DNA of 63,932 nt, from NCBI GenBank assembly GCA_001179505.1, contig CDMY01000275.1, positions 1 through 63,932 of the forward strand, in the 5' to 3' direction. Below, one piece after another: positions 45,105-48,677 of the stretch. Every line of letters starts with the position of its first letter. The first letter of the stretch is position 1. The translations under genes and the position numbers were made by a program. The notes below the pieces were generated by a model that worked only from the letters and a program-made list of their open reading frames with translations, was not told the origin of the DNA and made no database searches. This DNA comes from Vitrella brassicaformis CCMP3155. Lineage: Eukaryota; Protista; Chromerida.

Positions 45105-46802
45105 ATGGTGCCGCCTCACCTCAGCCTCTCGCTCCGCACGGCATTCGCCATGCTGCTCCTGACGTACGCATCCGCATTCCTCACCGTGCTCCCTGCGGTG
45201 TCCCCTTCAAGTACGGCCCCCCACCAGCCACTGGGCAAACCATCGTCATCTCTCCCCCGGAATGCCATGCCGGCCCTCTTTCTGTCGCGACGGCGCGACA
45301 AGGAGACGGCGGCGAGTTCTGTGGCAGTGCCTGAGAGCGTGGATCACCACCGTGCTGCGGTGCCCAAGTGGGAGGTGCTGGATGAGTATGACGAGGCCTC
45401 CAAGAAGGACAACACCAAGATGTTTGAGGAGATGATCGCCATGCGCGACAAGCTCTTCTACAAGATACAGAAGGAGCTGGGGCTCACCGAGGACAAGACC
45501 TTCACCGACCTCAAAGAGATCAAGGGCGAGGGAGATGCACGCCTGGGTAGGTCGGAACCAACGAACCAAGATGCAGTGCATGCTTCAGTTGATTTGCGTG
45601 TCTGCCTGCTGACTGAGAGCTGATACATGTGGCTTGGCTGGTTGATCCAATCCGTGTGTGTGTCAGGTGAGATCTTGAACTATCGCGGTGATAAGATCGA
45701 GTGGGGCGTGCGGTCATGGATCGGTGAGCAGCCATGCACACACACACACACACACACACGGACGGCCATCTGTCTGTCTGTCTGTGTCTGTCGTGTGTTT
45801 CTTCAGGCCGGCCGGCTGAGGCGTTCCACAACATCCATTTGACCATGTGGTGCAACGAGAAGACACACGCGCCGCATTTGGGGCTGGTCTTTGCTGCCGT
45901 GCCCAAACCATTCATCTACCTCGACGTCGTCCCGAGGTGCGCATCGCATCATCGATCATCTGCATGACCTTTCGCAGCCGCGCGTGTGACACAACACTGT
46001 GTGTGTGTGTGTGTATGTGTGGGTGTGGGTGTGGGTGTGGGTGCAGGTATGACCAGGCCATCAGTCCTGATTACTTGTGGGAGGTGCAGCAGGGCATCAA
46101 CGACGCCTGCATCGGGGCCAGAAGGAACCAGCAGGACTTCATTCCTTTCGTCTCAAGTACGTGAGCCGAATGGCATGCGCACACACGTGTGCCCGCCTGA
46201 CTGAGCGCTCTCCTTCTGTTGTCTTGTCTTTTCCCCGCCAGACGACAACTATATGCGAGCCTGCCAGTCGTCATCATCCGTCTGCGCCAGCTTCGACAAC
46301 TTCGACGAATATAAAGTCAGCAACACCGAACATCCACACACACACACACACACGCGCAGGGAGGGAGAAGATGTCATGGTTTCTGCTGGTCATCTCTCTC
46401 TCATCGTTCAGCGCAAAGCGTTTCCCCTGGCGGAGCAATACGTGGACTACTGGATCAGAATGGTCAAGCAGGCCAAACCTGTCGCATCACCCAATGAGCG
46501 GGCCAAGCTCCGCTCACGCGATAAGCTCTTCCGCAAGTACGTCATCGACCGCGACCCCGGCAACCAGTTCGCCGACAGATTCCTGGGACGGGTAAGCAAG
46601 TGGGTCGGTGGGCGTCACCCATCAGTGCTGTTTGTCATCGGGTGTCGTTGGCCTTTGGCTCAGGGAAAGACTGACCGTTACCTGCTGGCCATGAAGGGGG
46701 AACTGCCGACGGCCCTTGACGCGTCGACCGCGGCCGCCAACGCGGTCAAGACGGGAGGCGTGCTCTTCGTCGGATGCACAGGCACGTGACCTCACCAGCA
46801 CA

Positions 46803-46833
<31 letters not shown>

Positions 46834-48677
46834 TCATACCACCGCTCCTATGTGTGGGTGTCGTGTCGTTGACTGCTCAGGTCGGACTGGCCGTCAGGTG
46901 CTGCTGGGAGCGATCGACTCTGGCCTGACGCCCATTACCATCCTGACGCGGTCGGTGGACCGCCCAGCCGTCAAGGAGCTGATGGAAGACCCGCTGCTCA
47001 AGCCACACATCAACTTTGTCGAAGCGGATCTGGACCGACCTGTGAGGGTGGGGTGGCGGCAGTGTCGTGAGCGCACTGTATCTGTGTGTCGGGTGTCGTG
47101 TCGTGGTCAGGATACAGTTGAGAAGGCGCTCGAGGGCATCCAATACGTCTACTTGCACGCCACCTCGCCGTAAGAACACACACACATGCAGTGCCCTGCA
47201 GGCAGCTGTCTTGTCTGTCTGGATTGGTTCGTTCATTCAGTGATCTGACGATACCTCCACCAGAGGAGATTACACGCGCGGAGACGCTCATCGCCGCAGC
47301 CAAGAAGAAGGGTGGGCCAGGCCAGCAGAAAGAAGGACAGACACGGAAGGAAGGGCCAATAAATATTGGCATCATCGCGCCGCGCCTGCTTTTGTGCTGC
47401 CTACCCACCAGATGCGCGTCACATCGTGTTCAACAGCCACGCGTGCACGGACCACAATCCGTTCAAGATCGACCACATCACGCAGAAGGCCGCCATCGAG
47501 GAGGTCGTCAAGAACTCGGGCATCCCTTTCACCATACTCAGGCCGACACTGTTCATGGAGGTAAGTGGGCAGATACAGAGACACACCAGACAGACAGACA
47601 GACACGCCGATGTGCCAGTCTGTCCTGTCGGTCTGTGTACCTTACCGAGTCATGTTGGCATGTTGGTGTGCTGACATGACTGACACACGTCATGTCTACA
47701 GGAGCTATGGAAGGACTACACGCGCAAAGCGGTGATGAAGAAGAAGGTCTTTCCTTTCGCCCTTTCAGACGACACCAAGCTGCAGCTGGTGGGTGGATTG
47801 CCGGTCGCTGGAGCCACCAACCAACCCGACAAAAATATATGCCCTTCACCTGTTTGTTCATTCTTGTGTGTGTGCCTGAATCAATCAACAATCAGGTGTC
47901 GTGTCGTGACATGGGTGTGGAGGCAGCCAAGGCTCTCTTGAGGCCGGAATCCTCACTCGACAAGACTGTCGACATCGCTGGTGAGCAGAGCAAAGTCATA
48001 GCCCCTTCCCCTCCCCCCCCCCCCCCCCCACNNNNNNNNNNNNNNNNNNNNNNNNNNNNNNNNNNNNNNNNNNNNNNNNNNNNNNNNNNNNNNNNNNNNN
48101 NNNNNNNNNNNNNNNNNNNNNNNNNNNNNNNNNNNNNNNNNNNNNNNNNNNNNNNNNNNNNNNNNNNNNNNNNNNNNNNNNNNNNNNNNNNNNNNNNNNN
48201 NNNNNNNNNNNNNNNNNNNNNNNNNNNNNNNNNNNNNNNNNNNNNNNNNNNNNNNNNNNNNNNNNNNNNNNNNNNNNNNNNNNNNNNNNNNNNNNNNNNN
48301 NNNNNNNNNNNNNNNNNNNNNNNNNNNNNNNCCCACACACACACACACGCCTGCCTGCCTGCCTGTGTGTGCGTGTGTGTCCATCCCGTCTATCAGGTGA
48401 CGAGCTGACGATGTCCGAGGTAGCGTCAGCGTTCGGCGAGTCGATGGGCGAGGATGTGCGGTACAAGCACACCAAGCTCTACAAGCTCATCGCCCGCCTC
48501 CTCAACCGCAACCTCTACAACTTCATTCGCTTCTACGAGGGCGAGCCATACCGAGCCGCCATCCAACAACTCACCAACGAGCGGGCCGACGGCGGATTCC
48601 CAGAGCTGTGGAGCTTCAGTAAGTTCCTGGCACAGACGCAGTGGGCCGACAAGAACAGGTCGCTCAAGAACCTGTGA
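45105..48677 (+). CDS. Plastid-targeted red chlorophyll catabolite reductase (RCCR)-like ferredoxin-dependent bilin reductase fused to an NmrA-like NAD(P)-binding domain
   Basis: Signal peptide ending ASA|F plus Ser/Pro-rich transit peptide. RCCR-like HNIHLTMW...APHLGL...FIYLDVVPR...PDYL...FIPFVS...YVDYW...RSRD...RDPGN. Then VLFVGCTG|RTGRQV via GC-AG intron 46782-46880, ITILTR, VEADLD, KAAIEEVVKNSGIPFTILRPTLFME, VSCRDMG, DIAGDELT. Gap at 48032-48331 lies in an intron. Confidence 0.78.

Follow-up and report, generated by a model that had tools for sequence, protein, structure and literature searches.

An RCCR-like domain and an NmrA-like domain encoded by one transcribed gene of the chromerid alga Vitrella brassicaformis

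Does a locus in which two neighboring reading frames appear, one resembling red chlorophyll catabolite reductase (RCCR), the other of the NmrA family, encode two proteins or one, and, if one, what could its two domains do together? The locus occupies positions 45105 to 48677 of a 63,932-nucleotide stretch of DNA (the window), contig CDMY01000275.1 of Vitrella brassicaformis CCMP3155, and is a nuclear gene of this chromerid alga, which has a complex plastid. The CCMP3155 assembly comprises 1064 scaffolds and 72,700,666 bp (Woo et al. 2015, PMC4501334). A preliminary description, made from the sequence alone, had joined the two frames into a single plastid-targeted reductase. Our analysis confirmed that one gene encodes one protein, which consists of a presequence, an RCCR-like domain, a linker, and an NmrA-like domain (Table 1).

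Three-frame reading and a codon walk from exon to exon gave a coding length of 2004 nt, or 668 codons (667 residues and the stop), and the only stop codon in the spliced frame is the terminal one at 48675-48677. Twelve of the 13 introns have a GT donor and one has a GC donor, and all 13 acceptors are CAG. The GC intron is intron 7, which lies between the two presumed genes. Without splicing, the exon 7 frame reads ...GGVLFVGCTGT and ends at TGA 46787-46789. Splicing from the donor ACAG/GCACGT (the slash marks the exon border; GC at 46782-46783) to the acceptor CAG, whose last base is 46880, leads into exon 8 at 46881 through the split codon G/GT and produces VLFVGCT-G-RTGRQVLLGA, which contains an intact GxxGxxG nucleotide-binding motif. 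The TGA, the GC donor, the acceptor, and the rebuilt motif had all been given in the preliminary description, and each proved exact on re-reading. Intron 7 also contains an ATG (46850-46852) that has no RNA contig coverage; because it is in frame with exon 8, an open reading frame (ORF) finder gives a separate 'NmrA' ORF at 46850-47173. The fusion as such does not depend on the intron 7 splice, because exon 7 alone encodes first the final helix of the RCCR-like domain (GKTDRYLLAMKGELP, which matches ..ELADRLFGILRGEER in the bacterial homologues), then the linker, and then strand beta-1 of the NmrA-like domain together with its first glycine (GVLFVGCT); an mRNA that began at ATG 46850 would encode none of them.

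Eight public sequencing runs contain the stretch, and four of these share about 47% of its words, as expected from the exons alone. We compared three RNA-type runs from three studies (X1, X7, and X8) with a DNA-type run (X3, 99% of the words). The RNA-type runs are labeled 'RNA?' or '?' and behave like cDNA, with the 13 introns removed and intron sequence absent. All 13 introns are spliced out in their contigs: ten junctions are listed joints in X1, X7, or X8, each of which fits the exon borders after the stated ambiguity shift, and the other three (exons 2/3, 3/4, and 5/6) are implied by the coordinates of the contig pieces. The listed joints have a depth of 0 in X3. The intron 7 joint is present in all three RNA-type runs and is given as 46778>46878 with 4 ambiguous letters; the mRNA is identical in every placement, and only the +3 placement (46781/46881) yields recognized intron ends, GC..AG. 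The mean depth of the bin with intron 7 is, in each RNA-type run, the value expected from its 48 exonic nt alone. One X1 contig of 1603 nt covers exons 5 to 14, with exons 6, 7, and 8 among them, and reaches into the 3' untranslated region. The X3 contigs run through the edges of intron 7 and are colinear with the window over 46053-46788 and 46840-48025.

The spliced contigs contradict a reading of the locus as two separate genes, or as an artifact of assembly or annotation, in which the RCCR-like gene would end at TGA 46787 and an NmrA mRNA would start at, for example, ATG 46850. This reading draws on the in-frame stop 5 nt past the GC donor and on the in-frame ATG within intron 7. Translation from 46850 would yield a protein without strand beta-1 and with only half of the glycine motif, and strand beta-1 shares exon 7 with the end of the RCCR-like domain; moreover, the intron 7 joint in three runs, the intron without depth, the single contig over exons 5 to 14, and the colinear DNA contigs all argue against it. 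No contig retaining intron 7 was seen in X1, X7, or X8, rare isoforms being beyond the reach of contig data. Nor did the RNA-type contigs show transcripts that end at TGA 46787-46789 beside a separate NmrA mRNA, the outcome that the preliminary description had named as incompatible with its claim that both 'genes' are one. That claim holds, and we rejected the two-gene reading, which we consider extremely improbable.

The window contains an assembly gap at 48032-48331, which lies wholly in intron 13 and therefore leaves the coding sequence unaffected. The joint 47980/48397 (GT..AG after a +1 shift) was found in X1, X7, and X8, with contigs extending to 48800, and the frame is continuous across it: GCT G/GT GAC reads ..D-I-A-G-D-E-L-T.., a contiguous motif in NmrA-family proteins. 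The poly-C run followed by CA repeats at the border of the gap probably caused it. DNA contigs with anchors of 18 to 21 nt link 48031 to 48349 or 48364 and are not reliable. Microsatellites of the (CA)n, (GT)n, or (GA)n type occur in at least 6 of the 13 introns of the gene. At position 46286, in exon 5, one contig found only in X1 has A for G (depth 29.9 of 73), which replaces an Ala codon by one for Thr; the transcript contigs of X1 are interrupted at this position, and the difference is probably one of strain or allele.

What is the first domain? Our family and structure searches were made exon by exon, and most exons are too short to score; single-exon family matches in Pfam and NCBIfam were confined to exons 6, 11, and 14. 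Exon 6 matched Fe_bilin_red (5e-4, 20.2 bits) and RCC_reductase (0.017, 14.8 bits), both below threshold, and gave a weak match to the NCBIfam models of PebB and PebA. When the stop-free ORF 46253-46786 was searched with HMMER against 1.84 billion representatives, eight matches were returned, of which five were true, all of them short RCCR-like proteins, and three were low-complexity or TPR noise. The bacterial RCCR-like relatives themselves pass Pfam RCC_reductase (PF06405) with 58.3 bits. A profile made from them (A2) matched the Arabidopsis RCCR structures in the PDB with an E-value of 1.4e-20 over residues 30 to 267, cryptophyte PEBB with 1.6e-7, and HY2 with 2.5e-6, and these E-values place the bacterial clade nearer to RCCR than to the ferredoxin-dependent bilin reductases (FDBRs).

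Searched against the whole Vitrella genome, the A2 profile matched the fusion locus only, and a second RCCR-like locus was not found in this profile search. Exons 6, 3, 1, and 2 scored 53.3, 48.2, 26.5, and 15.1 bits, with E-values down to 9e-13, and their matches are collinear at profile positions 192-255, 90-135, 11-69, and 68-103, so that the exon pieces tile the family alignment end to end. Of the 39 near-invariant family columns covered, 29 are kept, one of which is an artifactual Met at the start of the row; among the columns retained are W, S, H, T, F-x-Y-x-D-x-x-P, N, R, W, R-D-x-x-x-R, and D-P-x-N. The Asp of Y-L-D-V-V-P-R (the column of D129 in the bacterial family member P0004) and that of D-P-G-N (the D243 column) do not vary within the bacterial family and are retained in Vitrella. 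By analogy with FDBR-type catalysis, these two residues may act as proton donors, and the two-Asp arrangement resembles that of PebS, PebA, and HY2. We conclude from these alignments that the N-terminal domain belongs to the RCCR/FDBR superfamily, with the bacterial RCCR-like clade as its nearest kin, and is linked to the known enzymes via bacterial intermediates.

In Arabidopsis RCCR (AtRCCR), the acidic pair Glu154/Asp291 sits around the reduced double bond. We take the kept Asp of R-D-P-G-N to be Asp291, in the numbering of Sugishima et al. 2009/2010. Because the position of Glu154 is occupied by Val, we do not file the Vitrella domain as an orthologue of plant-type RCCR (EC 1.3.7.12). This agrees with the confinement of RCCR to streptophytes: true orthologues have been reported there only, and the enzyme is considered an innovation of this group (PMC9306834). 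The domain assignment of the preliminary description was thus right at the level of the superfamily, and the predicted match to RCCR/FDBR profiles was obtained, transitively through the bacterial relatives, whereas plant-type orthology does not hold, the nearest kin being bacterial. Plant RCCR (Arabidopsis ACD2/RCCR; PDB 2ZXL and 3AGB) shares with the Vitrella domain the superfamily, the domain length, and the C-terminal Asp; the similarity is detectable only through the bacterial intermediates. Plant RCCR is a plastid enzyme, as the Vitrella protein is predicted to be, and both kinds of organism have oxygenases with a PaO domain (pheophorbide a oxygenase/Tic55-type). Plant RCCR is not known to carry a Rossmann domain. 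The FDBRs (PebA/PebB, PebS, PcyA, and HY2) share the fold family and are more distant than RCCR; each of their steps draws on ferredoxin, and they lack an NAD(P)H domain.

The second domain can be assigned with good support to the NmrA-like family, although its profile matches are below threshold in single exons; the assignment draws on Pfam, PDB, and Atlas matches together with the intact GxxGxxG motif, in line with what had been proposed for the C-terminal part. Exon 11 matched Pfam NmrA (PF05368) with 1e-3 and 19.2 bits at positions 101 to 154 of 298, and exon 14 matched it with 0.27 and 11.2 bits at positions 219 to 251, collinear with exon 11. The simple sum of both is 30.4 bits, compared with a cut-off of 27, the other exons being too short to score. 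In the PDB, exon 11 matched the NmrA-like protein KstA11 (5f5n; 6.8e-4, residues 103 to 149 of 289) and also triphenylmethane reductase; PDB searches with exons 8 and 14 gave nothing useful, and exon 14 was assigned to NmrA clusters in the ESM Atlas with a value of 0.96. Besides GxxGxxG, the domain reads T-I-L-T-R after strand 2, F-N-S, P-F-T-I-L-R-P-T-L-F-M-E, and I-A-G-D-E-L-T. An Arg after strand 2 is typical of NADP(H) binders. In exon 11, D-H-I-T-Q-K (HxxxK) replaces the YxxxK of short-chain dehydrogenases/reductases (SDRs) and aligns to V-P-H-F-E-T-K of KstA11.

The Vitrella domain thus has the GxxGxxG motif, the strand-2 Arg, HxxxK, and the ..TILRP..F.. and ..G-D-E-L-T.. segments in common with the NmrA-like atypical SDRs (NmrA, HSCARG/NMRAL1, PCBER/IFR, KstA11, triphenylmethane reductase, and QOR2), and unlike these it is placed C-terminal to an RCCR-like domain. 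A link to biliverdin reductase B (BLVRB), which had been suggested previously, goes no further than a shared fold class: NAD_binding_10 (PF13460) scored 17.7 bits on exon 11, below the 19.2 bits of NmrA, and no BLVRB structure was among the PDB matches of the NmrA exons. BLVRB/flavin reductase and the anaerobilin reductase ChuY, Rossmann-fold enzymes that depend on NADPH and act on linear tetrapyrroles, provide a functional analogy for the second domain. ChuY is mentioned in PMC10151467. A genome search found no close paralogue of the NmrA half elsewhere in the Vitrella genome, and both halves are single-copy.

In complex plastids, nucleus-encoded proteins carry a bipartite presequence, a signal peptide followed by a transit peptide that starts with Phe. 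The fusion protein begins with segments that resemble these. Hydropathy over residues 10 to 32 is 1.6 to 1.9, and residues 1 to 24 end in A-S-A, followed by Phe; residues 25 to 85 consist to 61% of S, T, A, P, R, and K, with 7 basic and 4 acidic residues, and the alignment with bacterial proteins begins only at about residue 86 to 90. A PebA-like FDBR of the same genome has a similar start, ..VSA/F... We infer that the fusion protein is directed to the plastid, and the ASA/F segment and the Ser/Thr/Pro/Arg-rich stretch fit the plastid targeting proposed in the preliminary description. It had also stated that the NmrA part lacks a start or targeting peptide of its own; we likewise find neither a separate Rossmann beginning nor a presequence there.

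Table 1. Features of the fusion gene and of related loci. Positions without a prefix are those of the window.
Feature	Position	Strand	Remarks
Fusion gene coding region	45105-48677	+	14 exons; three-frame reading and codon walk across exon borders
Exons 1-7	45105-45546, 45667-45723, 45807-45936, 46047-46156, 46242-46315, 46412-46591, 46664-46781	+	
Exons 8-14	46881-47041, 47111-47169, 47241-47311, 47412-47560, 47702-47788, 47896-47980, 48397-48677	+	
Signal-peptide-like segment	45105-45176	+	residues 1-24; hydrophobic core AFAMLLLTYASA; A-S-A then Phe, read from sequence
Transit-peptide-like stretch	45177-45359	+	residues 25-85; no counterpart in bacterial homologues
RCCR-like domain (RCCR/FDBR superfamily)	45360-46708	+	3' part of exon 1 to 5' part of exon 7
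Linker TALDASTAAANAVKTG	46709-46756	+	16 residues, Ala/Thr-rich, in exon 7; between the last residues alignable to bacteria and Rossmann strand 1
NmrA-like NAD(P)H-binding domain	46757-48674	+	about 295 residues; 3' end of exon 7 to exon 14
GxxGxxG nucleotide-binding motif G-C-T-G-R-T-G	46772-46781 and 46881-46891	+	split by intron 7; sequence reading and spliced RNA-type contigs
Intron 7	46782-46880	+	99 nt, GC-AG; holds in-frame TGA 46787-46789 and in-frame ATG 46850
Intron 13	47981-48396	+	GT-AG; holds assembly gap 48032-48331 and flanking poly-C and CA repeats
Microsatellites	45740-45760, 46000-46045, 46335-46355, 46800-46835, 47170-47185, 48011-48031, 48332-48350		
PaO-domain loci	C311:95215-95583, C635:170882-171151, C1064:168916-169083 and 176698-176898		Pfam
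PebA-like FDBR (L001)	C908:184308-187850 (match C908:185808-186350)	-	NCBIfam
Genes of the bacterial neighborhoods (examples)	L046:4324-5985, L094:6802-7950, L021:6841-7716		conserved catabolic neighborhood

Is this architecture found elsewhere? Closest to the first domain are bacterial RCCR-like proteins that stand alone and have about 270 aa; they are 37 to 44% identical over exons 3 and 6, are collinear with the whole Vitrella domain, and have most of the invariant residues in common with it; unlike the Vitrella protein, they are single-domain, have no presequence, and are encoded in catabolic gene clusters. They come from Microbulbifer, Biformimicrobium, Rheinheimera, Paraglaciecola, Chloroflexota, and Acidimicrobiia. 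A word-index search with P0004 (274 aa), which covered proteins of 150 to 480 aa and thus left fusion-sized proteins outside its range, returned only this bacterial or metagenomic family of about 270 aa, with named relatives from Microbulbifer and Biformimicrobium. The family members named in UniRef are called 'red chlorophyll catabolite reductase', and those listed with PF06405 are all of full length.

A scan of GTDB species genomes with the bacterial family gave 284 loci, of which 80 were kept for the analysis of neighborhoods. These belong to Gammaproteobacteria, Chloroflexota, and Acidimicrobiia, with single loci from Rhodospirillaceae, Nitriliruptoria, and a 'proteobacterium'. In none of the 80 does a C-terminal extension follow the RCCR-like match, which ends at the C-terminus of the ORF; two long ORFs with a weak RCCR-like match have no Pfam domain in their extensions. 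No long fusion protein was matched among the 1.84 billion representatives, a search that did not return the Vitrella protein itself, so that its coverage of chromerids is uncertain, and literature searches for RCCR or FDBR together with NmrA, Vitrella, or Chromera found no paper. The earlier remark that no example had been described therefore still stands: the RCCR-like plus NmrA architecture was not found in any other sequence reached, from which we do not conclude that it is absent in Chromera or other eukaryotes.

The neighborhoods of the bacterial genes are catabolic in character. A CN_hydrolase gene (amidase/nitrilase-type, about 554 aa) is present in 55 of the 80 loci, followed by genes for aldehyde dehydrogenase (33), MFS transporters (26), aromatic-type FAD monooxygenase (24), Rieske/VanA_C oxygenase (21), Amdase/EutA-like proteins (17), CoA-transferase III (17), and methylisocitrate-lyase-like proteins (13). 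Such a cluster could encode a pathway for pyrrole- or tetrapyrrole-derived compounds. Genes for short-chain or extended SDRs stand beside the RCCR-like gene in some clusters, and single examples contain SDR genes, TonB receptors, or a second RCCR-like paralogue. In Microbulbifer bruguierae (CP118605.1, L006:3894-9837), two divergent RCCR-like paralogues lie in one cluster flanked by TonB-dependent receptors, and one of them comes after a YfcH/epimerase-like gene of the Rossmann type and a gene for an adh_short SDR. We considered the 286-aa Rossmann gene next to the Microbulbifer paralogue as a counterpart of the NmrA domain and rejected it, as it is YfcH/epimerase-like and has no similarity to the Vitrella exons. 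At another locus (L007:6711-9804), a Rieske/VanA_C oxygenase gene lies between two RCCR-like paralogues. In a metagenomic contig (L004:3-1079), an alpha/beta-hydrolase-like gene with weak Pfam matches overlaps the RCCR-like start by one base, in an operon-like arrangement.

What, then, could the fusion protein do? The Vitrella genome contains at least four PaO-domain loci above the Pfam cut-off and one canonical FDBR, which is PebA-like (126 bits for the NCBIfam 15,16-dihydrobiliverdin:ferredoxin oxidoreductase, compared with 76 for the PebB models); an exon-level genome search found no second FDBR of the PebB or PcyA type. We tentatively propose, with somewhat less than even confidence and from sequence comparisons, that the protein has two active sites that act one after the other on a single metabolite of the plastid, most likely a linear tetrapyrrole. 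The mature protein would be located in the plastid, where its RCCR-like domain would bind either red chlorophyll catabolite from a PaO-type oxygenase or a bilin, for instance the one that the PebA-like FDBR produces. It would reduce one C=C bond with electrons from ferredoxin, with the Asp residues of Y-L-D..PR and R-D-P-G-N donating protons. The tethered NmrA-like domain would bind NADPH and reduce the same molecule a second time, in a hydride-type reaction, and the serial action would mean that no photoreactive intermediate escapes. Serial reductions with hand-over of an intermediate have a precedent in the PebA-PebB pair.

In this proposal, the NmrA-like domain would not feed electrons to the first site. 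Enzymes of the FDBR/RCCR type receive single electrons from ferredoxin and form substrate radicals that are protonated by acidic residues, and an NmrA-type domain has no flavin or Fe-S center and is capable of hydride transfer only. Because nothing in such a domain would turn a hydride into single electrons, it is unlikely that NADPH supplies the RCCR-like site through a self-sufficient relay, and we rejected NADPH as the electron feeder of an FDBR-type site. The idea of a 'self-sufficient' reductase, put forward in the preliminary description, is mechanistically weak for this reason.

Several observations weigh against serial catalysis on a tetrapyrrole. The NmrA matches are below threshold exon by exon. 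Within 6 kb of the RCCR-like gene, none of the 80 bacterial loci encodes anything related to the Vitrella NmrA exons, and the bacterial genes therefore provide no independent support for a functional pair. Heme oxygenase was not found by an exon-level Pfam search of the Vitrella genome, a weak negative given that genes are split by introns. At the column that we take to be AtRCCR Glu154, the bacterial family has Ala and Vitrella has Val, and plant-type chemistry on red chlorophyll catabolite is therefore not guaranteed. The second domain, in turn, might not be catalytic at all. Several members of the NmrA family, among them NmrA and HSCARG, are sensors and not enzymes, and sensing or docking roles belong to NmrA, HSCARG/NMRAL1, and the N-terminal domain of Tic62. 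The NmrA-like domain could accordingly sense stromal NADPH/NADP+ or dock a partner and in this way gate or place a ferredoxin-dependent RCCR-like reductase. We regard this as possible, if on the unlikely side. It would explain why the catalytic Tyr of SDRs is replaced (D-H-I-T-Q-K), as in the sensor-type proteins NmrA and HSCARG, and it is consistent with a best family match to NmrA instead of a named reductase family and with the lack of an NCBIfam enzyme model on any exon. However, HxxxK or a Lys alone is also present in active reductases of the PCBER/IFR type, the closest solved matches (KstA11 and triphenylmethane reductase) are enzymes, and the Ser (of FNS) and the Lys are kept.

Another explanation retains two reductive steps and changes the substrate, which could be some other conjugated metabolite, such as an N-heterocycle or the product of its ring opening, the fusion then being a two-step reductase of an unrelated plastid pathway. 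The 80 bacterial neighborhoods, with their amidase/nitrilase, aldehyde dehydrogenase, and oxygenase genes, point in this direction, as they are catabolic and contain no recognizable tetrapyrrole gene such as heme oxygenase or PaO, and so does the lack of conservation of Glu154. Still, the known enzyme families of this fold (FDBRs, RCCR, and CPO) all bind tetrapyrroles (PMC13193486), the Rieske oxygenase gene beside the RCCR-like gene in 21 of the 80 loci mirrors the plant PAO-RCCR couple, and the amidase, maleate-isomerase-like, and methylisocitrate-lyase-like genes would, speculatively, fit the breakdown of a pyrrole-derived maleimide. A non-tetrapyrrole substrate thus seems unlikely to us. 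The most specific version of our serial-reduction proposal, a two-cofactor tetrapyrrole-catabolite reductase that combines a ferredoxin step and an NADPH step in one polypeptide and arose within the chromerid lineage out of an RCCR-like gene of the bacterial type, is quite doubtful in all its parts taken together.

In summary, the novelty of this locus is a domain architecture built from two known families, from which its functions are inferred. If both halves are active, the protein would be the first enzyme of the FDBR/RCCR superfamily physically coupled to a pyridine-nucleotide module. For the disposal of phototoxic ring-opened chlorophyll in algae with complex plastids, the only RCCR-like gene of Vitrella, a transcribed fusion, provides a concrete candidate that can be expressed. 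Should the proposal of a two-cofactor reductase be true, alveolate algae would detoxify ring-opened chlorophyll independently of the streptophyte RCCR, or would finish a bilin begun by the PebA-like FDBR. It also draws attention to a large family in bacteria, with 284 loci in the GTDB species representatives, and the same proposal, if true, would reveal the substrate class of these widespread RCCR-like proteins.

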